From Paramoeba atlantica (lineage: Eukaryota > Protista > Discosea): a DNA stretch of 64,000 nucleotides. Shown here piece after piece: positions 13,054 through 43,689 of this stretch. A program made the translations under genes and the position numbers. How positions within the stretch are numbered: the first letter of the stretch is position 1; every line of letters starts with the position of its first letter. The notes under the pieces were generated by a model. The model searched no databases. It saw nothing but the letters and a program-made list of their open reading frames with translations, and was not told where the DNA came from. Where the stretch lies: NCBI GenBank assembly GCA_977017575.1, contig CDRNVI010000144.1:1-64000 (forward strand), written 5' to 3'.

Positions 13054-13079
13054 CTCAAATAATATCAAGAAAAATTCCC

Positions 13080-21900: not shown

Positions 21901-23300
21901 CCTGGCATGGTGTGCAGGTGAGAGGGTGTTGAGTGTGGGGTCAGAGTAGGTTTTGGTGGGTGTTTGGATCACACAACAAAAGCAGGGGGTTATGTGGGTT
22001 GACACAACTCGAACATTAATACACAGATCCTGGTCCCCTTGCCACTCACGGATTGTAAGATCAGGTTGCTTGTGTGACTTCCCAATTGGCCAGTAGGCTC
22101 CATCTTGGATTGTTGTTTTTCCTGCCCAGTTGGCAATGTTCTTGAGTTCATCACGGAGAGCATGGTGTCTTCTTGTGGTTCCTCTTCCACGACTGGTGCA
22201 GTCTGAGAGGTGGAGGAAGGATGCAGCACAGAGTTCTTTTTCACAAAATCCACACTTGACAGTCCCAAGTTCACAGAGAGCCCCAAGGTGTGGGTCAACG
22301 ATGTCAAGCCTACGTCGGTAGGCTTTTTTATTCTTTTTTTATTCTTTTTTTTTCTTTTTTTTTTTTTTTCTTTTTTTTTCTTTTTTTTTCTTTTCTTTTT
22401 TTCTTTTCTTTTCTTTTTCTTTTTCTCTTTTTTTCTCTTTCCTTTTTGTCATTTTTATTCATATCTGATTTTCTGAAACAGATTTACCTTTGCATTGTCC
22501 GGTGTTTTCCTTTCTGCAGAATCAAATTGCTGAATGTAATTTATCTTTCTCGAATGTCTTTATTAATTTAAATTAATAAAGAATTATTTTCTCTCTATAT
22601 CTCTTTCTTTCTCTTCAAAAAAGAAGAGGAATTTGAAGAAGAATGTTGTCGAGCTGGCTTCTGTGTTTCTTTTGAATCCTTTCCAAGTTGATTAAGATTG
22701 TTTCAAAAATTCTCAAAAAGGCCAGTTCAGTTTTTTCTGCAATTCAAAAAAGGATTATTTGCTTTTTTTTTTAGCCTATTCTACTCTCAAAATCAGTTTA
22801 TTTGTCAAAGGACCCTATTTCTGTCGAAATAGGGAATTTGTTGTTGAAAATTTGTTGAAAATTTGTTGAAAATTTGTTGTGTATTTTTCACAACAAAAGA
22901 ATTTGATTTCAAGTATGGTACACTACTCTCATATGTGAGAGAATAACAAGAAAAGAAACAAGAAGAAACTTTGAAGAGAATAAGTTTATTTGTATTAGCA
23001 AACAGATTTTGTGAGAAAGAAGGAGTGAGAAAAAACAGCAAAAAAGAAAAGAATGTTTCGAACAGAAATGAAAGAAATATGAAATGAAAGAAGAAAGAAG
23101 AAGAAGATAGAGAAAATAGAGAAAATGCCAGTTGAGGAAAGGAAGCTGGATCATTTGGTGAAGGAAAGATGATAGAATCGTAAAACTGGGAAGAGGAAAG
23201 AAAAAAATTAAATTCTTCAAAGAAATAGAGAAAAGGAGAAAAAGAAAAGGAGAAAAAAGAAGAACAAACAAAATAGAGAAAAAAACCTCTCTCTCTCACT
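18981..23300 (-). CDS. Multi-exon gene or pseudogene of unknown function
   Basis: Protein-like exons with GT/AG borders, e.g. ORFs 21421-22005 (ending in a GTGAG donor), 21990-22307, 19277-19591 and 18981-19220 (GTGAGT donor at ~19005). It has some stops and frameshifts and an internal duplication (19987-20047 versus 20996-21058). Confidence 0.5.
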
Positions 23301-23336
23301 CCTCACTCTTTCAAAGTTTAAAAGATTCAAAAACAC

Positions 23337-26300
23337 TCATTCAAAATCTTCAAAATCTTCAAAATCATCAAAATCATCAAAATCATCATTCTCTGTTGTT
23401 GTATCATCATCATCATCATCATCATCATCACTCTTTGATGAGGAGATCTCATCGTCATCAACCAGAAGGAGGAGAGAAGATGAAGAAAGAGGAGAGTGGT
23501 TAGGATTTCTTTGGGTGGTCTTGTTCTTTTGTAAACAATGATGAGGGAATAAGTTGGTGTTGGTTTGTTGTTGTTGTTGTTGTGATTTTTTAAAGTGAAA
23601 ATTTTGTTGTGGTTCATGTGGTTCAACATAAATAAAAGAAGGAGGAGGAGAATCCTTCTCCTCCTCCTCCTTTTTTTTTAAAGGATTTTGTTTCTTCTTT
23701 CTCTTTGGTTGTGATGAAGATGAAGATGGTGGTTGCTGATTGGCAATCCTCATTGAGGAGAGGTGGTGAGTTGGTAGTGGTGGTAGTAGGAGTGAGGAGG
23801 ATTGTTGCTCGGAAGAATAAGAAGAAGAAGAAGAAGAAGGAATGATGTTTTGTTGTGAAGTACAAAGAGGAGGTCGAGGAGGTCGAGGAGGTCGAGGAGG
23901 TTGAGGAGGTTGAGGAGGTCGAGGAGGATATTGGAGCTGGTGTTGTCGTTGTGGCAATAATTGTCTGACTCTTTTTGTTCTTAATTTTGTTGTTGTTTTC
24001 TTCTTCTTCTGTAGTTTCTCCCTTTCAAACTCTTTTCTCTTTGTCTGGGGCAAACAAAACCAAATTGCTTTTTCGAATAATACGTTCCACCCCTCCCAAT
24101 GTTCTTCTTCTTCTTTTGCACTATTATCTTTATCCCAGCAGCTGCTTCGCAAAAGGTATTGCACAAAGTTTTTCCATGTAGGAAATTCATTGTCATCTCT
24201 TCGAAAAAAACTTTCCCCACTAATGAGAGCCCACAATAAATCATAATAGAGTTCCTCTTTTGTGAAAAAAGCTTTTGTTTGTCCTCCATTTGGTTTTCTT
24301 GCGCAATATTTAGAGAAGTTTTTTGAATGATGAAAGATGTTCAAATGATCAATAAAGTATTTTACAATCTTTTGAACTTGTGTCATTTCAAAAATTCGAA
24401 GTTGGAGTGAGGGTGAAAGGTCAGCTGGCCCAATATCAACACTCAAGAGAAGTTCTTTTTGGAACAAAGAAGCAGAAGAATCAGAAGAACCAGGAGGAAA
24501 ACAAGAAGAAGAAGAAGAAGAAGACTGAGGAGAAGAAGAATGCTGAAAAGAAGAACACTGAGAAGAAGGACTGAAACAATCAGAAGTCAGAGAACAAGAA
24601 GAATCAAAAGAAGAATCAGAAGAATCAGAAGAATTAGAAGAATAATCAGCAGAAGAACAAGAAGAAGAATGAGAAGAAAAAGAAGAATGAGAAGAAGAAG
24701 AAGAAGAACGAGAAGAAGAAGAAGAACAAGAACAAGAAGAAGAACGAGAAGAAGAAAAAGAATGAGAAGAAGAAGAAGAACGAGAAGAATCAGAAGAACA
24801 AGGATATCCTTGTGAAGAACCAAGTCGTTGAGAAGAACCAAGTCGTTGAGAAGAACAAGAAGAAGAACCAAGTTGAGAAGAACCAAGTTGTTGAGAATTA
24901 CTTTTTGCAAAAGAACCTTCTTTTTCTTCTTCTAAATGCTCAACATTCAATTGTTGTTGTTGGAGATGTAACACAAAATGGGATATCAAATGTGCATCAG
25001 AAAAAAGAAGAAAAAATTCTTTCTTTTTTTGAAAAAAAGATAAGAAACGAGAAAATTGTTGAGGAAGACAAGAAGAAGTTGATGAAGAAGTCAAAAAAGA
25101 CTTTTCAATCAAAGAGAGAAGAGCATCATGATGTTCTTGAGAAGGTGGTCTTTGACAAAGACCAAAAGAAGAGGTCTCTTCACAAAAAACACAAGAATAC
25201 ACTGTGTGATGAGAAGGAGGAGGATCCTTCTTGGAGAGGTCACCATTATCACTACACCCATCACCACACCCATCACCACACCCATCATCACCACCATCAC
25301 CTTTTTTTTTCATCTGTTGGAGCTGTTGTGATGAAAAAAAAGGTTCAAAAAACTCCTTCTTAAATCCAACAAATTCCTCCTCTCCACCAATCCAAAGTGG
25401 AAGAGAGCTACTTCCAAATCCTTTCCCACTTCTTTTCATACGAGTCAGTTGGCCTCCCAAAAATTTGTGACAGTATCCAAAACTGTTAATCAAATCTCGG
25501 TAAAGAGCTTGTTGATCCGTGGACAAAGGTTTTGTATCTCGCCCAAAAAAAAGTCCTCCAAAATTAAATTCTTGTGTTGGGGCCCAATGAGAAAGAAAGA
25601 GAAGATCTCGCAAATGCTGAATATAAATCTTTTGCGGGATACAAAAGATTTGATCATGATTACGAATAAAGTCAATCATCTGAAGAGAAGAAGAAGAAGA
25701 AGGAGAAGGTGGTTGAAGAGAAAGTGCCTCAAAAAGACTTTGTAGTTTTAATAATTGATTTCTTTTAATAAAAGACAAACTTTCATTAAAACTCACACCA
25801 AAAATTCGAATTTCAATCCGTACCCCACCTAGACAACCATCACCATCACCACCTCCGCCCTCCCCTCCTCTCCTCCTACCATTAACAATCTTTTCAAATT
25901 TAAAGAGTAATTTCTGAAAAGATTTTTCCCGTTGGCGCAGTGCTCCAACTGTCTTTGGCATTTCACTCCACCGAATTTTCGAGAAATTGGTCAAAAAATG
26001 GAGAATTGGTGAATAAATCTTCACCATTGCCCATTTCTCACCCAACAAAAGAAATGGTTTCGTTCGAGACCCAAAGGTCAAAGTTCCAATTGGACACTCC
26101 TCTTTGAGAATTTCTTTGAAAAAAAGAAATCCTTCAGTTGTACCACTGCCAACATCACCTTTTTCTCCTCCTTCACCTTCTCTCCCTTCTCCTCCCCCAA
26201 CAAGAGGAGGAGCTTCTTCTTCTTCTTCTTGTTCCTCTTCATCATACTTATTGTCATTATCCTTCTTCTCACTTCTTCTTCTCTTCCTCACTATCCTCTT

Positions 26301-27950
26301 CTTTGAGTCAGAGAAGAAAGAAGAAGTTTGGAATGAAGAAAAAATCCCAAAGGATCCAAAAAACCGAAATAATGGAAAAAAGTTTACAATTGGAATTGGG
26401 GGGGGAGGAGGAACAACCACTGTCGCACCAAGGTTTGGGTTTGCTGTTGAAAAAGAGGAGGAGGAAGAAGAAGAAGAAGAAAGAGAGAGAGAAGATGAGG
26501 AAGACAAGCCAGAGGAGGAGGAGGAAGTTTTTTGGGGGAAAAAAGAAGAAGAGATAAGTTTTGGAGAAAAGAGAATAATCTCTTTCATTGGAATTGTTGT
26601 TGAAAAGTCAAAACAACAACAATGTCTCAATTCTTGAGATGATGATGAAAAAGAGATATTTTCTCTATCTTGTAAGGAACCAGGAGGTGGTGGGGGAGGG
26701 GAATTCGAGAAGGAGGAGGAGAAGGGAGAAGAATGAGAAGAATGAGAAGAAGAGTTTGAACAATGTGACTGCTGCTGCTGCTGTTGAGGCAAATGAGAAG
26801 AACAAGAATAAGAAGAACAAGAAAAAAAAGAACGACTTAAGGCAGAGGAGGAGGAGGAGGGAGACTGTTGCTGCTGCTGCTGCTGATGTTGCTGAGCATT
26901 TGGATCCAAAGTATTCGAACGAGAAGAAATTTGTTGTTGTTGTTGTGGTCCAACAAAAATCTTTGAAGGAGAGGATGATACACTCTGATCAGAGAGAAGT
27001 GTGGTATCACAAAAAGAAAATTTTCTTAAAAAAGAAAATAAGTCAGCGAATTGTTGTGTTTTTTCACAGTGGTCTGACCACTCCTGATCAACAATAGGAG
27101 GATCATCAGCATCATCATCACTCCAAAAAGTATGTTTTCCACCGTAACTTCCCACTCGAATATGAGAGACATCACATAACTGTAAGGCTTTCACAATCAA
27201 TGAAATCGAAAAATTTTGTGTTTTCCGGATCACACACTTTCGAGGAGAAGATTTTGGAGGAGGAGAAGATTTTTTCGAGGAAAAAGAAGAAGAGGAGACA
27301 TCTTCACCATCTCCTTCTTCATCAAATCCAGGTTGAAGGTCGACTGAAAGGACTCCGTAAATATTCAAAAAGTGAACAAAAGCTGTCCGTTTTGGAAAAG
27401 ATTGTTCAGTATCAGGAAACCAAAGAAAAACTGGTTGAATAGAGAGGATATTCACGAAGGGATAACGAAATAAAAGAGGATCTTCAGGGAGAGAACACGA
27501 AAAAGAATCAGGTATTAAAAGAGTTGATGGCCCTCCAACAAATAAAGGAAGCTCAGAGACAGGCAGCCAAAAGGTGTAAAAATCTAAATCTACCAATCCA
27601 TCCACCCATATTGGCAGTTGAGGTAAATCCAGAATGGATTTACCATCACATTCACCATCACCATCACCATCACCATCACCATCACCATCACCATCACCAT
27701 CACCATCACCATCACCATTACCACCAAAAGACTGCTTTGAAGAAGGAAAGTATTCTTCTTCTTCTTTACTTTCTTCTTCTTCTTCCCCTTCCTCTTTTAC
27801 TTCTTCAATTGTCCCTTCTTCTTCTTCTTTTTCTCCAAAAAAAGAAGTTACACAGTGGTAGTGGTGTGACTCTTCTTCCTCTTCTTCAGACAAAGACCGA
27901 ATAGAATGATCATCACCATCACCATCACCATCACCATCGCCATCATCCAT
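23337..27950 (-). CDS. 1537-aa uninterrupted terminal exon of a very large uncharacterised protein; upstream exons extend to at least ~30870
   Basis: A long open frame with globular blocks (VKIYSPILHF, GGVRIEIRI, FFGRDTKPLSTDQQALYRDLINSFGY, CARKPNGGQTKAFFTKEEL) between S/Q/E low-complexity tracts. Upstream in-phase exon candidates lie at 28130-28560, 28780-28970, 29128-29510 and 29600-30870. Confidence 0.8.
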   Translation of the reverse strand: MDDGDGDGDGDGDDHSIRSLSEEEEEESHHYHCVTSFFGEKEEEEGTIEEVKEEGEEEEESKEEEEYFPSSKQSFGGNGDGDGDGDGDGDGDGDGDGDGECDGKSILDLPQLPIWVDGLVDLDFYTFWLPVSELPLFVGGPSTLLIPDSFSCSLPEDPLLFRYPFVNILSIQPVFLWFPDTEQSFPKRTAFVHFLNIYGVLSVDLQPGFDEEGDGEDVSSSSFSSKKSSPPPKSSPRKCVIRKTQNFSISLIVKALQLCDVSHIRVGSYGGKHTFWSDDDADDPPIVDQEWSDHCEKTQQFADLFSFLRKFSFCDTTLLSDQSVSSSPSKIFVGPQQQQQISSRSNTLDPNAQQHQQQQQQQSPSSSSSALSRSFFSCSSYSCSSHLPQQQQQQSHCSNSSSHSSHSSPFSSSFSNSPPPPPPGSLQDRENISFSSSSQELRHCCCFDFSTTIPMKEIILFSPKLISSSFFPQKTSSSSSGLSSSSSLSLSSSSSSSSSFSTANPNLGATVVVPPPPPIPIVNFFPLFRFFGSFGIFSSFQTSSFFSDSKKRIVRKRRRSEKKDNDNKYDEEEQEEEEEAPPLVGGGEGREGEGGEKGDVGSGTTEGFLFFKEILKEECPIGTLTFGSRTKPFLLLGEKWAMVKIYSPILHFLTNFSKIRWSEMPKTVGALRQREKSFQKLLFKFEKIVNGRRRGGEGGGGDGDGCLGGVRIEIRIFGVSFNESLSFIKRNQLLKLQSLFEALSLQPPSPSSSSSLQMIDFIRNHDQIFCIPQKIYIQHLRDLLFLSHWAPTQEFNFGGLFFGRDTKPLSTDQQALYRDLINSFGYCHKFLGGQLTRMKRSGKGFGSSSLPLWIGGEEEFVGFKKEFFEPFFSSQQLQQMKKKGDGGDDGCGDGCGDGCSDNGDLSKKDPPPSHHTVYSCVFCEETSSFGLCQRPPSQEHHDALLSLIEKSFLTSSSTSSCLPQQFSRFLSFFQKKKEFFLLFSDAHLISHFVLHLQQQQLNVEHLEEEKEGSFAKSNSQQLGSSQLGSSSCSSQRLGSSQRLGSSQGYPCSSDSSRSSSSSHSFSSSRSSSCSCSSSSSRSSSSSSHSSFSSHSSSCSSADYSSNSSDSSDSSFDSSCSLTSDCFSPSSQCSSFQHSSSPQSSSSSSSCFPPGSSDSSASLFQKELLLSVDIGPADLSPSLQLRIFEMTQVQKIVKYFIDHLNIFHHSKNFSKYCARKPNGGQTKAFFTKEELYYDLLWALISGESFFRRDDNEFPTWKNFVQYLLRSSCWDKDNSAKEEEEHWEGWNVLFEKAIWFCLPQTKRKEFEREKLQKKKKTTTKLRTKRVRQLLPQRQHQLQYPPRPPQPPQPPRPPRPPRPPLCTSQQNIIPSSSSSSYSSEQQSSSLLLPPLPTHHLSSMRIANQQPPSSSSSQPKRKKKQNPLKKKEEEEKDSPPPSFIYVEPHEPQQNFHFKKSQQQQQQTNTNLFPHHCLQKNKTTQRNPNHSPLSSSSLLLLVDDDEISSSKSDDDDDDDDDTTTENDDFDDFDDFEDFEDFE

Positions 27951-28668
27951 CTTTTTTGGTTCAAAAAAAATTACATCATCATTGTCACTAAAAATTTTAA
28001 AAAAAACAATAAATTAGAAAAAAAACAAAATGAAAAAAAGAAAAGAAAAGAAAAAAACAATACTTAATAATAAAAAAAAATAAAGAAAAACAACACTTAA
28101 TAAAAAAAATAGATATTTTAGTGTGAACCTGAAAGAAGAAAAAGAGAGTTGTGGAGATGAAACATTAAGTATATGATCTCTTTCTTCTGTTTTCTCCTCG
28201 TTATAACTACTCATCATGAAGAGTAGTGATTCTTCTGTAAAGAAAAAATAAGAAAAAATTTTCTTCATTGTGTTTTTGTTCATTGAACCTTCCTCCCAAC
28301 CCAAAACCCAAAGGAGAGAGAGAGAAGAGAGAGAGAGAGAGAGGGAGGTTGAAAGAAAGAAAATAAAATGAAACAGAGATGAGATACCTTTTGTTTTGAG
28401 GGATGATGGCAGTGCTGATGAAAAGGGTGGGATAAGAGATAACCTCCTCTTTTCCTCTTCTTTTGTGTCCTCTCCTCTCATCCTGAAAGATGGAAGTGGT
28501 GATGGTGATAAAACATTCTTCTTTTTCTTAAATGATGATGATTTACAAGAAGAAAAAAACTTCTTTTTATCTCCTCTAGAAAAATTAAGAAAAAAAAGGT
28601 ATCATGTTGTTAGAACAAAAATATCTTAACATCATTTTTTTTTGTGACTTTAATTACTTTTTCTATAT

Positions 28669-28701
<33 letters not shown>

Positions 28702-29954
28702 AAAACTGTTGATCAGAAAAAGAAGAATGAGAAGAAGAAGAATGAGAAGAAAAAGAATAATAATCTTCATTATCATTCCTTTTCAAAGGGTTTTGGGTTC
28801 TGCTTTTTTTGTCAGTCTTCTTCTTCTTCTTAGCCACCACCACCAGAGAGGGAGACTGAGAACCATGGGATTGAGAACCAAATTGTTGGGATAAAAATTG
28901 AGATGATGATCGAGACTTAGTTGGCTGAGATGTTGGCCACTTGAAAATTTCTTTCTCCTGAAACACTTCCCTAAACCCAAAATAACATTAGATGAAAATA
29001 GTTGAATTTAATAAAAAGAAACAAAAAAATTTTAATTTAAAAAAGAACAACAAAGAAAAAATAAAAAAGACCACATCAACACACAACACACAACACATAA
29101 TACACAATCAATCAATCAATCTATCAATCAATCAATCAAAAAAAAATTGAAAACAAACATTCCAGCAGACAATGGAGAAGGCTGCCCCTTTTCTTGCAGA
29201 GAACATTGCAGCAAAGAGGATTGGTGAGAAGGGAAAGGAAAAGGGGAAGGAGGAGAAGGGGAAGGGGAAGGCTGCTGATGAGATGGAGAAGGAGAAGGAG
29301 AAGGAGAAGGAGAAGGAGAAGGAGAAGGAGAAGGAGAAAGAGAAGGAGAAGGAGAAGGAGAAGGAGAAGGGGATGATGATAGAGAAGGGGGTGATGGAGA
29401 AGGAGAAGAAGAAGAAGGAGGAGGAGAATTAGAGATTTTTTTTCGGTGATTTATCTTCTTCTTTTTTGTTTTGAGAGATGGAGCAGGAGAAAGTTTCTTC
29501 TTCAGTTTTTCAACCCCTCCATCATCCACTAAATAAAATCAAAAAAAAAAAAGGAATTGATAAAACTATTTTTCAATAATAAAGAAAAAGAGAAAAATCA
29601 AAAAGTGAACCAGTAGAACAATAATATTGTGGTAGACCATTATCAGTCACAAAGAAGGATCCAGCTTCATCTCTATTCTCACCACAATTTTTCTGAATGT
29701 TCCTTTTTTTAGAATATCCATAAGGGGGAACCTTCCAAAATAGTATTCTTTGTTGATGATAAAAGAAGTTTTTTGAGTCTTCTGAAAGACTTTTTCTTCG
29801 ACGATGACAATGATATCGAGATGGTTCAGATGATTGGCAGTGGATTTGTTGTCTTTCTTGGGGGGGGGGGGGGGGGGGAGCATCCAAATCAGCAACAACA
29901 GGATCACCAGCAAGAGCAACAGCAGCAGCAGCAGGAACAGCAACAGGAGCAATA

Positions 29955-30810
29955 GCAGCAGCAGCAATATTGCTGTTGCTGGAAAGACTTCTCTTTCGAT
30001 GAGTGGCACCAAGAGCAGCAACAGGATCACCAACAGCAGCAGCAGTAGCAGCAATAGCAGCAGGAGCAGCAACAGGATCACCAGCAGCAACAGCAGCAGG
30101 AGCCGGAGCAGAAGCAGCAACATTGCTGTTGCCGGAAAGACTTCTCTTTCGATGAGTGGTGCCAGGAGCAGGAGCCGGAGCAGAAGCAGCAACATTGCTG
30201 TTGCTGGAAAGACTTCTCTTTCGATGAGTGGCACCAGGAGCAGGAGCCAGAGCAGAAGCAGCAACATTGCTGTTGCTGGAAAGACTTCTCTTTTGATGAG
30301 TGGCGCCAAGAGCAGCAACAGGAGCAGAAGCAGCAACATTGCTGTTGCCGGAAAGACCTCTCTTTCGATGAGTGGCACCAGGAGCAGCAGCAGGAGCAGA
30401 AGCAGCAACATTGCTGTTGCCAGAAAGACTTCTCTTTCGATGAGTGGTGCCAGGAGCAGCAACAGGAGCAGAAGCAGCAACATTGCTGTTGCCGGAAAGA
30501 CTTCTCTTTTGATGAGTGGTGCCAGGAGCAGAAGCCGGAGCAGAAGCAGCAACATTGCTGTTGCTGGAAAGACCTTTCTTTCGATGAGTGGCACCAGGAG
30601 CAGCAGCAGGAGCAGAAGCAGCAACATTGCTGTTGCTGGAAAGACTTCTCTTTTGATGAGTGGCACCAGGAGCAGCAACAGGAGCAGAAGCAGCAACATT
30701 GCTGTTGCCGGAAAGACCTCTCTTTCGATGAGTGGCACCAGGAGCAGCAACAGGAGCAGAAGCAGCAACATTGCTGTTGCTGGAAAGACTTCTCTTTTGA
30801 TGAGTGGCAC
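29955..30810. repeat. 72-bp coding minisatellite (10 regular copies plus 1 displaced copy)
   Basis: The motif cattgctgttg recurs exactly every 72 bp from 30121 to 30769. The likely coding frame (minus) gives GATHRKRSLSGNSNVAASAPVAAP and is continuous with ORF 29573-29887. Confidence 0.95.
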
Positions 30811-31619
30811 CAGAAGCAGCAACAGCAGCAGCAGCAGCAGCATTATTACAAGAAACACTTTTTTTTTTGCCTAAAGAAAGGGTTATCAGAAGAAAAAAAA
30901 AGGAAAAAGGGGGTAGTTAAGAGAGGAGAGAGAAAAGAAAGGGTTTAAAGTCAGATTTAAAAAAACCAACCTTGATAGTTCAACATATTCAGAACCAAAA
31001 AAAAACTGAAATAAGAGCGCAGGGGGAGAGTGGTACAAAAAATACTAAAACGAAAGGATAAAATCGTTTCTCTAAAGAAAGAGTAAAAAAAAAAAAAAAA
31101 AGAAAATGTTCTTTTCTTTTTCGCCCAACAAAAAATAAAAAAAAATAAGTTTTTTTGTTGTGCAAGTGAAAACTCAAGAATAAAAAAAATCACAATCCCA
31201 AGGGAATACAACAATTCAGACTATTTAAAAAAAAAACTATTTGAAAATTCATACCTCTTTTATTTTGTGACATAAAAAAGTTCTTTTTGAATTCAAAAAA
31301 GTTCACAGAAATTTCATTTGTAGAGTGAGCGAGTGAGTGTGACACCACATAAATCAAAAACTCTCTGAAAAAATCACTAAAACCAAAAATTAAAAAAAGA
31401 TCCTTTTCACTATCAAAATGAGTTAAAATAAATCAAACCAAAAAGGAATCATCCCTTCCAAAGCGTGTGGTGTGTGTTTTTGTGTTCTCTATTCTCTCTA
31501 TTCTCTTTGCTTCCTTATTTTTCCTTCCATCCTACATTCTTTTCATTTGGTTTCCTTTTCTTTTTTTTCATTATTTTTGATTCTTTGTAATAACATATTT
31601 TTGTTTCATTACGACAAGT

Positions 31620-31666
31620 ATGATGAAACAAGCGAAGATTGATTTTCAATCGAACCATCAACAACC

Positions 31667-31697
<31 letters not shown>

Positions 31698-34600
31698 CCA
31701 CAACAATCGCAACTCCAACTACAACCACAACAACAACAACAATCGCAACTACAGAATCCACAACAGGGGGATTCTGTTTCCCTCTCTCAACAAGATGCAG
31801 CAACATCAACAATCCGAACAATGACAGAAATAATTCAAGAACAAAATATTGAAAAAAAAGTCGAATACCTCAAAACATTTTGGACAATTCCATCAAGAGG
31901 ATCTGCAACACAAAACAAAGAAACCCTTCCAACACATCTCCAAGAACTTGAAAATGAATCCATGATTGAGATATTAGCAAGTCAATATTATGATGATCCG
32001 GTAATTATGGTTGATTATGGTTGTTGATTGTTATGGTTGTTGTGTGGTTGTATGTAATTGTGGTTGTTGTGGTTGTAGTTGTGGTTGTTGTTTGTTGTTT
32101 GGTTGTTGTTGTTTTTTGTTTGGGGAAGGGAAAAAAAGAGCACCAGAGGTTTGTTTGTTTGTTTTTTTGGCGAGGAAATCTTCTTTTCAGCAAAAAAAAA
32201 TTCGCGAATTTTTTTGTTTTTTGTTTTGTTTTTTGTTTATTTTTTGTTTTTTGTTTTTTGTTTTTTCTGTCAGCAGTTTGAGAAAAGAAAGAAGAAAATT
32301 TCTTCAGAAAGAATGAAATGAAGAGAATATTATTATAACTCTTTCAGTATTTTTTTTATTTATCTTTTTTTTCTTTTCAAAAACAAACACTTAGGAAGTG
32401 AATTCACGATGCATAAGCTCTGAAAAGGAACAAAATGCATTGAGACAATCACTTTCTCAAAGCGGATGGAATTTGGGTTTGCTTGGTCTTTTTTGTTTTG
32501 CTAAAAAAACGAATTGTGATGGAAACAAAGAAATTCGAGTGACAAATGAAAATCTTGTAATGTTTTTTGCAATTGATGGGCGACACCGTTGTCTCGTTTT
32601 GAAGGTATTTTTCTTTTTTTTTTCAATGTTCTTTCAAGAGTGCAAGAAAGGGGAGTGTTTCTTGTTGGGGGGGGTGTTGTTGTGATTTGGTTTTTTTTGT
32701 GTTGTGGGTTTTGGGTTTTGGGTTTGTGTTTATGGATATATTTTTATAGGAGTGGAATTCCATACTTTCAACAACATGCTTTTGTTTTGTTTTGTTTTGT
32801 GTGTTGTGTTGTAGAAGGATAAAATAATACAACACCAATAATGCACAACAACAACCTTTAAAAACCCCATTAATTACCCTATCCCCACCTGGTTATTGAC
32901 CCCCCTTTTTTTTCTCTAAATTCTCTGATTTATAGAATTTGAGTTTTACTCATAATGATGTTTTGGGTTCAGAAACAACACCCTTCTTTCCTCTTTCTGC
33001 TTCCTCCTCCTTATCATTTCTTACTTCTTCTTCTCTTTCTTCTTTTTCTTTTTCTCCTTCTTCTTCTTCTTCTTCTTCTTCTTCTTCTTCTTCTTCTTCT
33101 TCTTCTTCTTCTTCTTCATTGTACAAGAAGTTTCGAACCATTTGCCGAGGGAAATGGTGGTCTTTTACGAACTTTAATTCTGAACCACAACAAAAACTAT
33201 TTTTTCTTTTTGAAGGGATTGCTTCAACAAACCGAAATGTTTTTGTTCAATGGACATTATTGGATTTTGTTCGTGCAATTCGAAAAATTCGACAAAATTT
33301 TGAAAGGGCTGATTTTGAAGAAGAAGAAGAAGAAAAGGGAGGAGGAGATAGCAGAGGAGATGATAGCAATAAGGCTGGTGAGTTGAAAGACAGTGAGGAG
33401 AAGGCTGAGGAGAAGACTGAGGAGGAGAAGAAGACTGAGGAGGAGGAGGAGGAAGGAGGGAAGAGGAGAAAAACAAAGAAAAAAAAAAAGAAAAAAAAGA
33501 AAAAAAAGAAAATGACAGAAAATTTTTTAAAAAAACTTTTGCAGTTAGAACACACCTCATCAAAACAAACACTTCTTCGGATGGCTAATACAATTTTAAA
33601 TTCTGCCGGAATGGAGTCTCAAATGATTCGATATTTAGTTCAGAGTGATTTGATTGTTGAAGAGAAAGGAGAAGGAGAAGGAGAAAGAGGAGAAGGAAAA
33701 GGAAGACGAGATTCAAAGGTTTTTTATTTTTTATTAATTTTAAAATATTTAAAGAATATCCTTATTTTTTTAATTTAAACCCCTCCCATAAAAAAGCCAA
33801 CAACCCTCTTTTTTTCTTTTTTCTTTTTCTTTTCTTTCTTTATTGCAAATATTAATTTGAAGAAAAAACTCTTCTCTTCTCTCTCTTCTCTCTCTTCTCT
33901 TTTCTTCTTTCTTCTCTTATTTCTCTCTTTTCTCTTCCCTCTTTCTCTCATTTCTCTTTTTTCTCTCTTCTCTTCTCTTTTCTTCTCCCGGCGGGGTTCT
34001 CTTCTCCCGGGTTCTCTTCTCCCTGGTTCTCCTATCTATCTCTTCTTTCCTTTTCTTTTTTTTTTTAGAAAGTAGATTTTGTTTTAAATGTACTTGAATT
34101 TTGGAGAGTTCTTCATTCGAGCACATATAAAGATATTTTTTATCGTGGCTTTTTTATGTGTGGACCTGTACAACAACAACAACACACCACCACCACCACC
34201 ACCACCACCACCACCACCACAATGTCTCCTTTTGTGGGTGTTGGTTCTCCTATCTCGTCTTCAGAGCATCCATTGTCATCATTGCCATCGCTATCATCCT
34301 CCTGTTTCTTTGCTCAAAACGATCAAAAGAGAACTGAATTTCTTCAATTTTGTGCTTCCAATCTAAAGCGTGTGAGTTCAAAATCAAGTATTGGTTTATT
34401 TCATCAGAAATTTAAAGAAATTTTTATCCCAGAAGATGCTCAAAATTTCATTTTAACTGGCCCTCTTCCGATGAACATCATTAATCGAAACTGTCGAAAA
34501 GGTTTATCTTTTATTTTTTTTCTTCTTTTTTTTTCTCTCTAATTAGAAAAGAACCACACAAAACATACAACACACAACACAACACAACACAACACAACAC

Positions 34601-35116
34601 AACACAACACAACACAACACAACACAACACAACACAACACAACACAACACAACTACAAAAAAAAAACCTGTGGCTGCTCTGTTGTGCTTTATTCATTTTT
34701 TAAGAAATAATTTTATTAATTATTTTAAATAATTTTAATAGATACGAAACAACAACAACAACCTGCCAAAACTACTAATAGTATCATTGAGGGAGATGGT
34801 GGTGACAATGAGATTATTGTTATTTCTGATGATGAAGTTTTTTCATTGTCACCAGTAATAATAAGTTGTTTGAAGAGTGGTGATGATAAGGAAGAAGAAG
34901 AGAAGGAAAGGGAAAGAGAAAGTGTTTCGGATGATAGTAAAGAAGAAAAGAGAGATGATAAAGAAGAAAAAGAAACTGCTGAGGAAAAGAAAAAAGAAAG
35001 AGAGAAGAAAAAGGGAGAAAGAGAACAACATACTACTGCCACCACAACATCATTATTATCGTTTCTATACCAAAAAATAATCCACTTTTACCTTTTCAAT
35101 ATTTTATCACTACAAG

Positions 35117-35175
<59 letters not shown>

Positions 35176-36022
35176 AACTCTTTTTCTTCTTCTTCTTTGA
35201 ACTACCATTGTAACATTGTCACTTCTTTAAAAAAAAAGAAGCATTACAAAAAGTTCGATAAAATGATAAAAGAAATTTCTTTTCACGGTTTTAGTTATCT
35301 CTCAACCCAACCTGCCAGTCTTTCTTTGAAGCATTCTTCTTCTTCTTCTTCTTCTTCATTAGATGGAAATAAAAACCCCTCAATTACCATCGTATCATCG
35401 ATCGAAGACTTGCTTGCTGAGGTAACTACTATTTATCTATCTCTCTTCTCTCTCTCTTGGTTAAAAAATCATTTTTTTTATTTAAAATGATTGAAATTTT
35501 TTTTTAAAAAAAGGAAAAAAAGAAAAAACATATTGATATTATCTTTTTTAGTTCTTTTACCAATGATGGTGATGATAAAAGAGTTGCAACTGCTGGTTTT
35601 GAACTGGTTTTTTATTTTCTTATTTTCTCATTTTATTTATATTTATTTAAAAATTATTTATTTTTTATCTTTTCTTTTCTCTAAACCCAAATCATATTGG
35701 TCTTTCTAAAATCCCCTTTCTTCCACCCAACACCCTAACACCCTAAAACCCTAACCTCAGTTGTACGAACTTCAAAATTTTACCAACCTGCTTAACATTA
35801 TCAAAGAAATGAATAAGTTAATTGTTTTCTTTGTTCCATTGAGTCGCTTTGAATTCACTCTCGATCAATTAAACAAAAAACAAATTTTAATTGATTCTAT
35901 TTGGTTATTTTTTTATTTATTTTTCCCACCAAATCCAAACACACACACACATAATACAACAATACTCTCTTCTTCTGAACTCTCTTCTGAACACATGTGT
36001 CACCCTAAACCCTCTTTTCTTT

Positions 36023-36070
<48 letters not shown>

Positions 36071-37711
36071 TTTTATATGTAACTCTTCCTCTCCTTCTCC
36101 TCTCCCTCCTTCTCTCTTTTCTCTCTTTTCTCTCTTTCTCTCTCTTCTTTCTCTCTCTTTCTTTCTCTCTTTTCTTTCTCTCTTTCTTTTTCTCTTTCTT
36201 TCTCTCTTTCTCTCAGTTTCATTCATTTGAAGCAAAACAACACCCAAAAAAGCAAAGAAGAAAAATGTTGTAACAAAAATTACAATTCTTTACCAATTTG
36301 GGTTTTGATTTATTCCCGAGAACCAAACGTAAAAAAGACAACGAAAGATGTTCTGTTCCAATGTCGTTATCAGAATATTGTAAAAGATGGTAATTTTGCC
36401 CAGTGGCTGCAAGGAAGAGAAAAAGTAAGAATGTCGTTCGAGAATGTTGTTATTCAAATGAAAAGTTATTCGTTTCAACGTAGTGATGGTGGTCGTAAAA
36501 TGATTTCTTACTTTATTGAGTCTGCTGTTCTGTGCCATATTCATTATCTTTTGAATGAATGTTTTTGCCCTACATCTCGAAATTTACATGTATGGGACCT
36601 TTGTGGTCAAGTTTGCCCCCAAAAAGACTTATGGGGACATTTCCAGTGGAAGTCAATCTCAATATTGAGTTCTTCCCCTCAATCTCTTGCTGATTTTCTC
36701 GAAATTGATAAATTAGTGGACACTCCTCTTCACAAATGTGGTGGTGGTCAACAACAACAACAACAACAACAAACAAAAGAGTTCTTTTCCTCTCTTTTCG
36801 TGGAGAATGAAGCGAAAGTGAGTCGTTTGGATGACGATAGTGATGAATATGATGGTGATGAAGAAGAAACTGACATGCATTCTTTTATTAATGATTCTGA
36901 TGAGGAGGAGGGGGAAGAGGAAGAAGGAGAAGGAGAGAAAGGAGGAGGAGGAGAAAGAGAAGAAGATGAGAAGACAAGAGGAGAGAAGAAGACAGAAGAA
37001 GAGAGAGTTGAACAAGAAGAAGAAGAGAAGAGGATTGAGGGAAAAAAAGAGAAAAAGAAACAAAAGGAGGACCAACAGTTGGTTGAGAAAGAAAAAGAAA
37101 AAGAGAAAAGAGAAAAAGAGAAAAGAGAAGAAAAAGAGAAAAGAGAAAAGAGAAAAAGAAAAAGAGAAAAAGAAGAAAAAGAAAAAGAAAAAGAAGAAAA
37201 AGAACAAGAAAAAGAAAAAGAAAAAGAAGAAAAAGAAAAAGAAAAAGAAGAAGAAAAAGAAAAAAAAAAAGAAAAAGAAGAAGAAAAAGAAAAAGAAAAA
37301 GAAAAAGAAAAAGAAAAAGAAAAAGAAAAAGAAAAAGAAAAAGAAAAAGAAAAAGAAAAAGAAAAAGAAAAAGAAAAAGAAAAAAAAGAAACAGAAAAAG
37401 GAACCAGGGCCAAGAAGTCTTTTCGTCATGCAAAAAGGGGGAAGGGAATCCCTCACAAAACTTCTTCAATTTTTTCATCTTCTATTCAAACACTCTCTTC
37501 AGTTCCTTCTTCTTCGTCTTCTTCTTCTTCTTCTTTTTTGTCTCAACCACCTCTCTCTTCTCGAAAACGACTTGCTTCTACAAACCTCTCTCCTCAAAAC
37601 CAAGAAAAGAGAAAAAAGAAGATAAGAGAAGAAGAAGAAAAAAGAAAGAAAATGAGTGTGAGAAAGAAAAGTGGGAAAAAAAGGGAGGAAGTTCCTCGGA
37701 TTGATTCTTAG
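31620..37711 (+). CDS. Multi-exon gene: ParB/Srx-like N-terminal domain, degenerate beta-class DNA methyltransferase-like region, and a KE-rich tail
   Basis: Phase-compatible exons (31620-32000, 32395-32604, 32936-33718, ~34068-34501, ~34741-35421, 35761-~35902, ~36216-37711). Exon 2 has LRQSLSQSGW...AIDGRHR (32572-32589). FILTGPLP (34447-34470) sits at the motif-IV position, and LLNECFCPTSRNLHVWDLCG (to 36607) at the motif-I position. Confidence 0.55.
34568..34652. repeat. (CAACA)n microsatellite in an intron
   Basis: A direct run of caaca units. Confidence 0.95.
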
Positions 37712-38305
37712 AAAAGTTTTTGTTGGGAAGGGGGGGAGGGGTAGAAAGTTTAGTGTCTGGTGGTTTTTTTTTTTTTAACTTTGTTGTTTTTATCTCTTTC
37801 TCTCTTTAATTTTTTTGGTTGAAAAAAAAAATAAAAATTAAAAAAAATTAAAAAAAAAAAATAAAAATAAAAAAAAATTAAAAAATTAAAAAATCAAAGA
37901 TTTTTTCTTGTTTCTTGTTTCATCTTTTATTAAAGCCTTCTCCTCCTCCCTCCTTCCCTCCTCTCTCTATATGTTTAATTAGGGTTGTGCAAAAAATATA
38001 AGGTTGTTTGATGTCAACAACACTCGTTCAAAAACTTGATTGATTCCACACTAATTTAGATGGATCAAAAATCGAGTCATGGTATTGAGTTAAAAAACTG
38101 CCCGCCTCAACAACACACTAATATCACACTCCTTATGACTGCGTATTTTTGTGTGAAACACCCTGAACAGTCTGTCAATAAAATTAGAGATATAATCACC
38201 CTAATCGGATAAGAATAATTATTATGCCTTGCTCATCCTCATGCTATCCCAAATTAAGAAAATCAAAAAAGAACCTTTTTTGAGCCCTTTTATCCAGAAG
38301 AAATG

Positions 38306-38306
<1 letters not shown>

Positions 38307-38368
<62 letters not shown>
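38307..38368. repeat. (GATT)n microsatellite
   Basis: A direct run of gatt units. Confidence 0.95.
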
Positions 38369-38370
<2 letters not shown>

Positions 38371-39420
38371 GTCAGATTGTTGTTGTTGTCGCTTCAGGTT
38401 TTCAACCAAAGAATCGCTTCTCTTTTGGTTAAACCATCAAAACCACCACCACCACCACCACCACCACTCGCCAGAACACCAACACAACCCCTTACTACAC
38501 ATCAATTCCCATCATCTCAAATAAAGGAAGAAGACACTGGAGCATATTGTTTTGTTGTCTTATCCGATTGCCCAACCTTCGAAAATACTGTTTCATCTGA
38601 AGATTGTCCCATTGAAAGATCCCAATTTCCTCCTTTTGTTCGAATTCAATAAATATCTCTTCAACATTGAAACTGAAAGTTCACCCAAAACCCCAAATAT
38701 GCTTTTCCTTCAAAAAGAACTGAAATCAAAACCTCGCAGTAATGTACTTTTATAAGGTGATGAATTTAACCAAGGTTCAATAATTCCACCACCACCACCA
38801 CCAAACAACAACCCGCCATGATCCTTATTCTTACTATCGCCATCACAACAACTCCTACTGCTGTTTCTGTTGCCCGCCATTGCTGCTGCCACCACCACCA
38901 CCACCATCATTTCAATCATGGTGATGAGAAAAAAAAAGGCATCATCTCATTGAAGTTCAAAAAAGGTTTGAGGAATGAAGGAATACAAGAACCAACAGCT
39001 GAATTATCGAGAGCCCCGAAGCCGTTTCCGTCGAGATGATTGACTTTCCTTTAATGAATAATCTGTAATCCCACCACCACCACCCATTCTCAACAGAATT
39101 TGTTGTTCTCAACGTATAAGGTAAAAACATGTCTTTTTCGCTCGGATTCATATTCAACATCAAACGAAGAGAGGAGACAGAGATGTTTCCTTCTCTCCTT
39201 CCTCCAGCAGCAGCAGCAGCAGCAGCAGAGCAGTACTAGCAGCAGCTTTCTCCTCCTCCGTTTCCGTCGTTGTTGTTGTGTGTTGTTGTTGTTGTTGTTT
39301 GATGAGTTGTCAACGTTGTGTTGTTCTTTGTGGTTGTCTCAAGAAGAGAAGATGTTCAAAAAAATTCAAAAAAAACCTTTTCGAAAAAAGGTTATCATTG
39401 TCCTCTCTCTCGCACCACAC
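38360..39420 (-). pseudogene. Fragmented coding region of uncertain identity, possibly YEATS-like
   Basis: Minus-strand segments NGWWWWDYRLFIKGKS...IQLLVLVFLHSS, SPYKSTLLRG and FNVEEIFIEF lie in different frames. Confidence 0.25.
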
Positions 39421-40862
39421 CCTTAGTCTTTCCATGTGTACCTCTAAAAAAAGAAAACAAGAAAAAACAAAAATGTTTTTCTTCTTTTCAAAAAAAAATA
39501 AATTAATCTTTCACAATAAAAAGAATTCTTTGAAACAAAAAAAGAAAAAACCTTTTTTCGAGCTTAAACCCTCCCTCCTCAATATGTTATTCAAACATCA
39601 GAAGAAGAGAGAGAAAGAAACACAACTTTTGAACCCCCCTCTCTCTCTCCGCCCCCCTCCCTTCTTCTCTTGACTTTCATTTGTTTTGAGACTCAAAATG
39701 AGAGAAAAGAAAAAATAAATTGAGTATTCAACTTAATCTTTTCTTTTTTTTTCTCTTTGTTATATTCAACTCTGCTGTCATATTATCGTTGTTGCCTCTT
39801 CCTTTAAAAAAAGAAAGAAAGAAAAAGTAATGTTGAATTAGTGTTTTGAAGGATAAAATGAAAAAAATATTATCTTGTTGTTTTAAATTAAAAAAAAAAA
39901 AAAAGAAAACAAAAAACCTTCTTGAAACCTCTTTCTCTTTCTTTCTCTTCTCTTGAGTCTCTTTCGCTCTCCCCCCCCCCCCCCCGAAACCCTAAATCTC
40001 TTTGGATGCCGTCGATTGATTCTCTTCAATAAATCACTAATTACATAAGTTATTAAAAAATATCTCTCTTCTTTCATAATATCAAATTAGAACAAACCAG
40101 CAAAAAGAAACGATTTATCACTGCTGGAAAAGCTTGATGTTCGCTCTCTCAACAAACAATAACAAACAACAACAACACATGCATCAATTTTGTGTGAGAT
40201 GATCTTTCCTCATCTTTCTTTTCCCCCCCCTTTCTTTCGTGGTTTGCCATCATAACACATCTTCTCCCTCTCTTTCCCTCTCTTTCCCTCTTCATATACT
40301 CACAAGACCAAACATTGACAACACAACAAAAGGATCACTGGAACAACCCAAAACCCAAACCCTCTTTTCATTCCAAAAACAAAAACAAAAACAAAAACAA
40401 AAACAAAAACAAAAACAAAAAAATCGGTGTCCCGAATTAAAAGACACCTTTTCAAATTGTTCATTTTTTTTTTATCAAAGAATATTTTTATTTGTTTCAA
40501 AAATAAATATCTTGTTCAAAAGAAACCCAAAAGAAACCCAAACACCCAACAAGATAAAATATGTGTTCATCAAACAATAGAAATCAAGAAGAGAAAATCC
40601 TCAAAGTCAAGCGTACAGTATAATATGACCACGAAATTCATGCGATTTTTGAGCGGAGTCCACAATTAAGCAGCACCTCTCACAAGAATTCCTTTTTCAC
40701 AACTCAACTTGAAGTTTTTGAATAACAATTGTTTTTGTTTGAATAAACAAACAAATAAACAAAAAATCAAAAACTGTAAGCTTTCATTGAATGATTTTCT
40801 TTTTCTGTCTTCTATTTTTGAATCAACATATTTCAACATGTTGTGTGTGTTGTGTGTGATAT

Positions 40863-40940
40863 GGGGGGAAGGGGGGGGAAGGGGGGGGGGGAAGGGGGGG
40901 GGGGGAAGGGGGGGGGGAAGGGGGGGGAAGGGGGGGGGGG
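40863..40940 (+). repeat. (G7-12 AA)n tract, potential G-quadruplex, ~225 bp upstream of the TET/JBP ATG
   Basis: Seven G runs separated by AA. Confidence 0.8.
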
Positions 40941-41164
40941 AGAGGTTTTGTGTTGTGTGTGAGTGTCAATTTTGAGGAGGTCACGGAAAGAAAAAGAAGA
41001 AAAAAAGAGAAAAGGCCAACGCGGCGGCGTGGCGTGTCACATTTAATTTTGCACTCTAAAAAAAGAGTGCTAAAAATTTCTCTCAAAAATCTCTCTTTTT
41101 TTGATTTCTCTTTTGCTCTCTCTCTCTCTCTCTCAATCTCTTTCGATAATCTCTCTCTCTCTCA

Positions 41165-42592
41165 ATGGCTGATTCTCAAGGGTTAGAAACTTCTGTTCAA
41201 AAACTCTTAAAGGAACATAATGATTTGGTTTTGAATGCTTGTCTCAAAATCAATGATTATATTCTTCTTTCTGAAACAACAATGACAAAAAACTCGCTGC
41301 CGCCACCACCACCACTACTGCCACCCTCATCGAGTGACCCTTGGTTTCGGTATCAAACTCATCAATCCTCTCCCCCAAGTGAAGCTAAAATCACTACACG
41401 AAAGAAGCCACCAAAACAATTAAACATTTGGTTGAATTCATTTCCTTTCGCTCTTCCGGCTATCTTTTTTTCTCTCCTCTCTCCCTACGAAAATGAGTTG
41501 AAAGAAAAGAAACTCAAAATGGTTCATCTCTTCTGTGCTGTTCTCCACTCTCTTGGACTTGAAACAAAACCTTCTTCTTCTTATTCTATGATCAAACAAT
41601 CGATTTCTTTTCATCGTCTCCAAGATCTCAGTCGAAATTTTTTTACAAAACCACCAGAGAATTCATGGAACGTCACGATAATATGCAAAAACCAAATTCA
41701 CCAAACGAAAACTCTTCCTCATCCTTCAAATCATGACCTTCAGAATCGTCACCTTTCTTGGTCTAAGATTCAGCCTGGATCAGGTCAATATCCTGTCCAA
41801 CTTATTCACGATGAACAGAGCGGAAAGTTTCTTGCTTGTTGCTTCAAGTTAGATTCTGAACATCAAAAGAAAAGAGAATCAATTATTGATTTGATAAAAA
41901 TTATTGTCGACTCTCACAACAATGTTCGAAAAGCTGAAACGAACTCGAAAACTCGATCTGGAACAATGGTTGGCTCGAATGGTCGGTTTGATGATTTTAA
42001 AAAGATGAGAACAATTTATGCTTTTAAAATAGGACTTCAAAGATGTGCTGATATTGTTTCAATTTTAAGTGATACAGTTTCGTTTTTGCATACTCTTCTC
42101 GTTAATTATTTTGCGGTCGCGGTGAAACAACTTAATCTCCCGGTGATCAAGGAAGATTTTTCAAAGTCCATTCTTGCCGATTATTTTCGTGATCAGACAG
42201 TTCAACCGAAATCAGCAATTCCAATCTTTGGTACTCACCAATATGTTGCAAATGCTCATACTGATAAAGATAAATCATTGACTTATGGTTTTTGCTTTCA
42301 AGAGAAGGGCGCAAAAGGTCGAAAGTTATTTTTCCCACAACACAAATTTTTTTTGGATTTAACCGATTCCTGTGCATTTATTTTTGATGGGACTGTTTCA
42401 CATGGGACAACTGAAGCAGGGCACAAACATCTTTCTCGATGGACTTGTGCAATGGTTGATAAAGGGGTTAATGAAAAAGATGAAAAACGGCAACTAAACC
42501 TTGATCTCAAACGAAAAACAAACCAATCACCTCAACAACAACAAACCCTAAAAACCAAAAAAAAACCAAAAATAAAACAAACTAAAAATTGA
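41165..42592 (+). CDS. TET/JBP-family 2OG-Fe(II) dioxygenase, intronless, 475 aa
   Basis: TRSGTMVGSNGR N-terminal motif; NAHTDKD (HxD, 42257-42265); LFFP...AFIFDGTVSHGT (distal His at 42401); final SRW arginine. This is the motif order of Tet_JBP domains. Confidence 0.8.
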   Translation: MADSQGLETSVQKLLKEHNDLVLNACLKINDYILLSETTMTKNSLPPPPPLLPPSSSDPWFRYQTHQSSPPSEAKITTRKKPPKQLNIWLNSFPFALPAIFFSLLSPYENELKEKKLKMVHLFCAVLHSLGLETKPSSSYSMIKQSISFHRLQDLSRNFFTKPPENSWNVTIICKNQIHQTKTLPHPSNHDLQNRHLSWSKIQPGSGQYPVQLIHDEQSGKFLACCFKLDSEHQKKRESIIDLIKIIVDSHNNVRKAETNSKTRSGTMVGSNGRFDDFKKMRTIYAFKIGLQRCADIVSILSDTVSFLHTLLVNYFAVAVKQLNLPVIKEDFSKSILADYFRDQTVQPKSAIPIFGTHQYVANAHTDKDKSLTYGFCFQEKGAKGRKLFFPQHKFFLDLTDSCAFIFDGTVSHGTTEAGHKHLSRWTCAMVDKGVNEKDEKRQLNLDLKRKTNQSPQQQQTLKTKKKPKIKQTKN

Positions 42593-43219
42593 TTTTTTTT
42601 ATTAATTTTTTAATTATTTTATTAATTATTTTTTTGATTTTTGAAAAAAAACAAACCCTAAACCCTTAAACCCTTTTCTTCTATTATTTTGAACTCCAAA
42701 AAACAAAAAGAGAAAGTAAAAGAAAAAAAATAAATCAGAAAAGAGGAGAGAGATTAACTAGCCGTGGGGGGGCGGTACGTATCAGAGATGAAACAAAAGA
42801 GGGGAGAGCAAATTGAGTACAGAGGGAGGGAGAGAGGGAGGGAGGGAAAAAAAGGAGCAATGAAAGGAGAGGGAGGGAAGCTTGTAAATCCTAATTGGTG
42901 GCCCACAATATCACCCCTAAACCCCCAAGAATACTTTAGGAAGAAAGAAAGAGGCAAAAAAGGAAAATCAGCAAAAAGAAAAAAGAAAAAGAAAACAAAA
43001 CAAAACAAAAAAAAAGAGAGAAAAAAGAAAAAAAAAAAAAAGAGAGGAAGAAAGAAGGAGAAGAGAAAAAAAAGGATCGGAGGAGCAAGAGAGACAAAAA
43101 AGAATAAAAGAGAGAAAAAAAAAAAGAAAAAGAAGAGAAAAAATAAAAGAAAAAAAAGAAAAAAAACCAAAGCACAAAGAATCCCAGTCCAGTACTTATT
43201 TCTTGGTGGTTTCAAAGCA

Positions 43220-43670
43220 AGAGTAAATCACAAAAGAAATAAGATGATACAATTTTCAATAAATAAAAGAACATTCTCTGAAAGAAAAAACATTAAAACA
43301 AAAAGTTATTTAAATATTATTTAAAAAAATATCAGAAAAAAGAAACTGAACCCCTAACCCATCACATCACATTGTGCTTTATTTGAGAGAAAAATAGGCT
43401 TCTTTGGATACAGTAAATCACAAGAGAATAAGACGATATCATTTTCAATAAATAAAGAACAGTTTCTGAAGGAAAAAACAATAAACCCAAAATTATTTAA
43501 ATATTATTTAAAAAAATACTGGAAAAAAGAAACGGAACCCCTCACATCACATCACATTGTGCTTTATCTGAGAGAAAAATAGGATTCTTTGAATAGAGTA
43601 AATCACAAGGGAATAAGACGATGTAATTTTCAATGATAAAGAACAGTTTCTAAAGAAAAAAACAATTAAA
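43220..43670. repeat. ~188-bp tandem repeat (about 2.4 copies), each an exon plus intron unit on the minus strand
   Basis: gagtaaatcaca...cacatcacattgtgctttat repeats. The minus-strand exon reads NCSLFIENDIVLFSCDLLYPKKPIFLSNKAQCDVM|GT. Confidence 0.85.
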
Positions 43671-43689
43671 ATAACAACGATAATTGGTA

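Follow-up and report, generated by a model that had tools for sequence, protein, structure and literature searches.

Here we analyse a 64,000-nt stretch of Paramoeba atlantica contig CDRNVI010000144.1 (the window) and, within it, a block at 23337-42592 that carries three predicted genes: a giant open reading frame (ORF) on the minus strand, a multi-exon gene on the plus strand and an intronless gene with a putative relationship to the TET/JBP dioxygenases. An earlier sequence-only reading had taken this block for a CpG-retaining, mobile or horizontally acquired DNA-modification cassette close to a telomere, composed of a giant unknown protein, a ParB/methyltransferase (MTase)-like gene and a TET/JBP gene. 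Our analysis points to a plainer reading: the block is probably ordinary subtelomeric DNA containing two orphan genes and one divergent TET-like gene, and forms neither a functional nor a mobile unit. The two low-complexity orphan genes would be lineage-specific and unrelated to each other, the TET-like gene would have survived from an old TET lineage that was formerly mobile, and the three would have become neighbours by chance and through segmental duplication of a chromosome end rather than through a shared function. The novelty lies in the TET-like gene, which would add a highly divergent member to an enzyme family, the Tet-like one, that is already known.

The TET-like gene is a single uninterrupted ORF of 475 codons that carries an HTD...H motif, in agreement with its earlier description as intronless. 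A word-indexed homologue search with this ORF returned nothing; phmmer, run exhaustively against 1.84 billion representative proteins, returned five. Four of them (P0001-P0004) are fragments of close copies of the ORF, and the fifth, P0005, is a 321-residue soil-metagenome protein with a library-wide E value of 2e-4. BLASTP adds support for homology at E 1e-12. When the family of the window ORF was aligned with that of P0005 in hhalign, the match reached a probability of 95% (E 3.4e-8) over 186 columns, covering residues 213-421 of the window protein, its homologous catalytic region; the ~210 N-terminal residues have no match to the family of the metagenomic relatives. P0005 in turn passes PF20515 (2OG-FeII_Oxy_6, of the Tet-like 2-oxoglutarate (2OG)-Fe(II) oxygenase superfamily) with 34.4 bits, the gathering cut-off being 27 bits. 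A word-indexed search from P0005 found just two further relatives: P0006, which scores 23 bits on PF20515 and comes from a contig (L006) of 59% GC whose gene context offered no clues, and P0007, which has faint matches to PF12851 (E 0.017) and PF20515. These three distant relatives, all metagenomic, are the only ones found among ~1.8 billion representative proteins. A scan of metagenome contigs returned two already-known loci and no others, and no relatives were found in the prokaryotic genomes or viral contigs scanned. Moreover, the residues of the HxD...H triad (H365, D367 and H413) are invariant in an alignment of the window protein with P0005-P0007. On this sequence evidence we assign the ORF, transitively, to the Tet-like 2OG-Fe(II) oxygenase superfamily as a putative divergent member. 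The TET/JBP assignment of the sequence-only reading thus stands by way of the P0005 family and the HxD...H triad, but not as a direct match to Pfam or the PDB.

By analogy with fungal transposon-borne TETs, we infer that the enzyme would oxidise a methylated DNA base, most likely 5-methylcytosine (5mC). The ORF might alternatively encode an oxygenase of the same superfamily that acts on protein, RNA or a small molecule, with no base modification involved. Consistent with such a substrate, the link to TET is at the level of the superfamily and passes through one intermediate family, and no arginine is conserved across the TET-like family after the distal His. In addition, G at +5 and D at +11 after the HxD of CcTET govern recognition of 5mC and N6-methyladenine (6mA), and the window ORF has K and F at these positions (PMC12730594). 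However, the intermediate family matches no oxygenase models other than PF20515 and PF12851, and an apparently multi-copy, pseudogene-rich and intronless habit fits transposon-associated TETs, not housekeeping hydroxylases. We therefore regard a non-DNA substrate as distinctly unlikely.

The TET-like gene has a small family of repeats in a related assembly, the ENA metagenome assembly ERZ24900291. Every close copy derives from this one assembly, which contains three further copies or fragments. One of these sits in a segmental duplicate (contig ctg2991l; L001) whose length is 20 kb or more. This duplicate is collinear with the window, contains the plus-strand gene as well as the TET-like gene, and continues through 9 kb of repeats past the proposed right edge of the block. 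Neither gene has stops in the window, and the duplicate has three stops in the TET-like gene and eight in the plus-strand gene. The other two are fragments. At L003, the homology is confined within the ORF, and the neighbouring genes are of the DUF4246 and B-box/NHL families; at L004, a 183-bp fragment adjoins a copia element. Both lie beside unrelated genes, with neither the giant nor the plus-strand gene alongside, and two of the three genes of the block co-occur elsewhere only in the L001 segmental duplicate.

An intronless, apparently multi-copy gene with truncated fragments scattered over unrelated loci, including one beside copia, in a genome that clearly silences and mutates its repeats, could be the cargo of a DNA transposon resembling the fungal Kyakuja, Dileera, Zisupton or Plavaka elements, and the same pattern has been described for fungal TET+ transposons (PMC12730594). 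The transposase and ends of such an element would have decayed past recognition, or the element would be larger than the part that can be recognised. Yet no transposase was found among 114 flanking ORFs of at least 55 residues that passed a complexity filter (17-23.4, 37.7-41.2 and 42.5-52.7 kb), no transposase domain was found by Pfam in the giant or plus-strand gene, and none was found elsewhere near the TET-like gene. A repeat search and self-BLAST detected no terminal repeats bracketing the block or the TET-like gene, only low-complexity purine/GA-rich matches, which confirms the sequence-only reading on this point. Neither terminal inverted repeats (TIRs) nor shared termini with target-site duplications (TSDs) were found for the TET-like gene, whose homology to L003 stops inside the ORF, and the viral and prokaryotic collections held no relatives. 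We think transposon cargo unlikely. As for the block as a whole, a mobile cassette is not borne out, given the missing transposase and terminal repeats and the TET fragments at L003 and L004 that lack partner genes; nor is horizontal acquisition, for which the prokaryotic and viral collections offered no relatives.

The duplicate also preserves a record of mutation. Its 389 aligned differences from the window comprise 368 transitions and 21 transversions; 299 of them pair C/G in the window with T/A in L001, and 69 run in the reverse direction. Changes on the side of L001 affect 18-28% of sites in all NCG contexts and ~20% of L001 CpGs; non-CpG C has changed at 1-6% (~3% overall). CpGs kept in the window but lost in L001 number 109, with 13 in the opposite class. 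When changes in the TET region were polarised with L003 as the outgroup, all 16 on the L001 lineage were C>T/G>A, and the window lineage had four changes. L001 has decayed ~4 times faster than the window copy, and has done so over the full 20 kb, including the non-genic repeats. Duplicated DNA in this genome gains almost only C>T changes, with CpG changed ~6 times more often than other C in the comparison of the window with L001. The C>T mutagenesis that the sequence-only reading had seen next to the block is upheld by this excess on the L001 side, by the 36 transitions and 2 transversions that separate the long terminal repeats (LTRs) of a nearby retrotransposon, and by an observed/expected (o/e) CpG ratio of 0.03 in the 0.8-17 kb interval.

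The further proposal that the block protects itself from C>T change is contradicted for the duplicate, which carries both genes and is heavily C>T mutated, with stops in its TET-like gene. The asymmetry between the window and L001 spans the whole 20 kb, including non-genic repeats; the simplest explanation is that the two loci differ in chromatin or methylation state. The same asymmetry, in which the copy with the intact gene lost ~4-8 times fewer cytosines over the whole 20 kb than its 96.6% identical duplicate, would also arise if the TET-like gene acted in cis to keep its own copy unmethylated and undeaminated, with the plus-strand protein, which contains a DGRHR motif, as a highly divergent ParB/Srx-type partner. 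This we consider very unlikely; if true, it would amount to a eukaryotic anti-silencing enzyme from a previously unsampled branch of the TET family.

The plus-strand ORF chain is probably a real multi-exon gene; its blocks contain no stops in the window and are broken by the eight stops in L001. Its product is rich in poly-Q, S, E and K. The ParB/MTase-like character ascribed to it goes back to one DGRHR motif in its 70-residue second exon, and it found no backing in any search. Pfam gave no ParB, MTase or other credible match for the long ORFs or for each exon-sized piece at E values up to 10. In the PDB, exon 2 matched no ParB/Srx chain, and the first 190 residues of the last block (36221-36790) found no support for a ParB or MTase fold. 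A tblastn search of 50,697 phage records with exon 2 returned nothing relevant. Finally, motif scans of the plus strand detected neither a GxxRxxA box in the 31.5-41.2 kb interval nor, in any plus frame, FxGxG (motif I) paired with [DNS]PP[YFW] or PC (motif IV). NodS was the only MTase-named match to this gene and scored at chance level (E 2, 11 bits). A GmrSD-like arrangement, in which the gene would contain a ParB-like and an HNH domain, was also considered and was dropped for want of statistical support.

What remains of the giant unknown protein described earlier is an intact orphan ORF of 1537 codons. At the local base composition, we estimate that a stop would be expected about once per 15 codons, and an uninterrupted frame of this length therefore cannot be due to chance. 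Around half of the protein is of low complexity, with runs of D/G, E, S, Q and P, and three more complex regions lie at residues ~100-330, 580-1018 and 1160-1300. No credible Pfam family matched the whole protein or these three regions, the central 439 residues had no relative in the PDB, and a search tuned to homologues of 485-1542 residues, which covers full-length proteins and large fragments, found none. No second copy of the gene is present in the window, L001, L003 or L004. By contrast, an extension of the gene by 3.3 kb upstream of its ATG was not confirmed. An in-frame stop precedes the ATG, and the gap between the giant and the plus-strand gene is 3.7 kb and contains a 72-bp minisatellite, located in a stretch of 48% GC amid surroundings of 35% GC. 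ORFs run over this minisatellite on the minus strand (29647-30858) and on the plus strand (29834-30874). Since the stretch is open on both strands, its openness is no evidence of coding; the promoter that the two genes were said to share at ~31.2-31.6 kb, which needs the giant gene to reach across the minisatellite, is therefore unproven. The minus strand of the minisatellite would encode a 24-residue 'NSNVAASAPVAAPGATHRKRSLSS' repeat, the plus strand being open too, and the end of the L001 contig sits directly beside it.

CpG content does not set the block apart. The CpG o/e of the whole block equals that of its right flank (0.40), and that of the giant ORF equals that of the left neighbour of the block (0.33), so there is no discrete CpG-retaining island of the kind that had been claimed. 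Strong depletion occurs only in 781-17000 (0.03) and 61701-64000 (0.20), and within the block the TET-like ORF alone stands out, with a near-normal value of 0.84.

Taken together, these results bear on the cassette proper, in which a ParB-MTase, a TET/JBP enzyme and a giant accessory protein would jointly shield the locus from C>T change. Although the DGRHR motif is preceded by a helix-like 'EKEQNALRQSLSQSGW' segment that resembles a ParB/Srx core by eye, the supposed ParB/MTase lacks a GxxRxxA box and paired MTase motifs and was matched by no profile, PDB chain or phage sequence. The 109 CpGs that the window retains over its duplicate (13 in reverse) and the near-normal CpG of the TET-like ORF would suit joint protection, but CpG inside the block equals that outside, and the duplicate was mutated despite carrying both genes. 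For the giant gene, neither relatives nor a further copy (in the window, L001, L003 and L004) could be detected, the TET fragments occur without partner genes, and no prokaryotic or viral relatives point to horizontal transfer. We find such a cassette scarcely credible. The sequence-only reading had itself stated beforehand that it would fall if the genes never occurred together elsewhere or if the domain calls failed in profile searches. The genes were not found together outside the one segmental duplicate, and the ParB and MTase calls failed; the cassette is largely refuted by the reading's own criteria.

Several observations weigh against our account of the block. The TET-like ORF, searched whole and as its core, matches neither PF20515 nor PF12851 even at E values up to 10, and in the PDB it has no sequence match to any solved TET, NgTet1, CcTET or CMD1 chain. 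AlphaFold2 models built from 4-sequence alignments were too poor to use, with predicted local distance difference test (pLDDT) scores of 36 for the window ORF and 41 for P0005, and a Foldseek search with the P0005 model gave noise only (best E 0.1). The left end of L001 is the end of its contig, and the giant gene may also be duplicated; in addition, sequence searches may be blind to functions of the orphan genes. Finally, the copy with the intact TET-like gene has ~4 times fewer C>T changes than the broken copy, which is what a protective role would predict; chromatin context explains this equally well. With these points in the balance, we still judge it probable that the block is ordinary subtelomeric DNA.

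Table 1 Features of the window, copies aligned to it, and regional CpG o/e
Feature	Position in window	Strand	CpG o/e	Basis and details
Telomeric CCCTAAA array	1-~780	none		Read directly; TTTAGGG-type (plant-type)
CpG-depleted left region	781-17000		0.03	11 CpGs in 16 kb
Chromovirus LTR pair	4039-4350 and 10600-10911			Self-BLAST; 312 bp each, 87.8% identical
Chromovirus RVT_1 and RNase H	7584-8141			Domain matches
Chromovirus chromodomain	9945-10331			Domain match
Left neighbour of the block	17001-23336		0.33	
Whole block	23337-42592		0.40	
Giant orphan ORF	23337-27950	minus	0.33	ORF scan; 1537 codons, uninterrupted
CpG-poor patch within the block	27951-29575		0.08	
Minisatellite ORF	29576-30916		0.24	
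72-bp minisatellite	30087-30844	open in both orientations		10.5 copies, 92% matches
Segmental duplicate L001 (ERZ24900291 ctg2991l)	31112-51777	plus		Collinear, 96.6% identity
Plus-strand orphan gene, probably multi-exon	31620-37711	plus	0.42	ORF blocks and frame-compatible GT..AG junctions
Its likely exons	31620-32000, 32395-32604, 32936 onward	plus		
Its further ORF blocks	34069-34539, 34729-35487, 35755-36270, 36083-37708	plus		
DGRHR motif, exon 2	32575-32589	plus		Motif scan; sole ParB/Srx-like feature
Interval before the TET-like ORF	37712-41164		0.50	
TET-like ORF, putative divergent Tet-like 2OG-Fe(II) oxygenase	41165-42592	plus	0.84	Intronless, intact, 475 codons
H365-T-D367 of TET-like ORF	42257-42265	plus		
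H413 of TET-like ORF	42401-42403	plus		
L003 truncated TET fragment	41411-42580			93% then 77% identity; homology confined within the ORF
L004 TET fragment				183 bp, adjoining a copia element
Right flank	42593-64000		0.40	
CpG-depleted right end	61701-64000		0.20	
tRNA Asp-GTC	58753-58824	plus		
tRNA Lys-TTT	59660-59732	minus		
tRNA Ile-AAT	59935-60009	minus		
tRNA Ser-AGA	61901-61986	minus		

The setting of the block is subtelomeric, in keeping with the telomere mentioned in the sequence-only reading: a telomeric array lies at the left end of the window, which is AT-rich, with ~35% GC overall. Telomeres of the TTTAGGG type have been reported from plants, cryptomonads, some fungi, oomycetes, xanthophytes and myzozoans (PMC3622300). 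A decayed Ty3/gypsy chromovirus spans 4039-10911, inside the 16-kb stretch with a CpG o/e of 0.03, and an integrase domain was matched in it in addition to the domains listed in Table 1. Extreme strand asymmetry marks 13000-23000 and 42000-51000 (AT skew +0.48 to -0.58), because long GA/GAA/GAAA-rich low-complexity tracts lie there; these tracts give rise to many spurious long ORFs on both strands. To the right of the block are a tandem 1.4-kb duplication (47580-50397; 89% identity, 68 transitions and 17 transversions) and a second, dispersed 0.9-kb repeat pair (45013-47349; 82.6% identity), in neither of which protein domains were found.

Further right, ~55600-58700 has 72-85% DNA similarity to two B-box/NHL (TRIM-like) genes at L003 (8652-14480), which hints at a B-box/NHL family of repeated genes; in the window, the sequence is split up into short ORFs. 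Such a family is unusual outside animals. Four transfer RNA (tRNA) genes are clustered at 58753-61986, and between tRNA Ile and tRNA Ser lies a 418-residue ORF (60436-61692) in a region of 43.5% GC and CpG o/e 0.65. This ORF may be a Crypton-like element, because it has a weak match to Phage_integrase (E 5e-4) and visible GRSAE...HSFRRSGAT...HGY tyrosine-recombinase motifs. At L004, a presequence-protease (PreP) fragment (5275-6213) scores 108 bits with human PITRM1 and 41 bits with Arabidopsis PreP; despite its plant-type telomere, the host is thus probably no plant.

Of the known systems that the block recalls, the ParB/Srx-MTase fusions of phages and prophages share with the plus-strand gene a single DGxHR-type motif, DGRHR. 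The plus-strand gene differs in lacking a profile, PDB or phage match, the GxxRxxA box and the SAM (S-adenosylmethionine)-binding and catalytic motifs of MTases, and appears as a large, intron-containing eukaryotic orphan. The mutation record resembles methylation-linked C>T decay and fungal repeat-induced point mutation (RIP), in that differences between copies are almost all C>T/G>A and prefer CpG, one copy is far harder affected than the other, and the repeats near the telomere are nearly CpG-free. Unlike Neurospora-type RIP, which acts on CpA, the window/L001 pair shows no CpA preference; and unlike the Pucciniomycotina type, with its strict TCG target, the pair is affected in all NCG contexts (18-28%). 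An intact gene beside a decayed duplicate provides a natural pair of loci for testing protection from methylation and deamination.

With the canonical TET/JBP enzymes (PF12851: metazoan TET1-3, NgTet1 and kinetoplastid JBP1/2), the window ORF shares the same predicted iron-binding chemistry, but it has no Cys-rich or CXXC region and no direct match to solved chains. The closer comparison is with the TETs carried by fungal transposons. Fungal TET/JBP genes ride on Kyakuja, Dileera, Zisupton, Plavaka, hAT, EnSpm, Helitron and other DNA transposons in rusts, mushrooms and Pezizomycetes, and the transposon-borne enzymes have been proposed to help the elements escape methylation-based silencing (PMC12730594). 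Like the PU, AG and PE types described there (PF20515; Kojima 2025, PMC12730594), the window gene would encode an HxD...H triad within an oxygenase domain of ~200 residues, and a family to which it is homologous scores above the PF20515 cut-off; it likewise lacks introns, apparently exists in several copies, some of them decayed, and resides in a genome whose repeats mutate by C>T. It differs in that the window protein itself falls below PF20515, and in that no adjoining transposase, TIRs or TSDs were found. Its relatives are three metagenomic proteins only, and its host has a TTTAGGG-type telomere, a repeat unusual for fungi. Transposon-linked TETs have so far been described from three fungal lineages, and the window gene would represent a divergent, intact member of the family beyond them.

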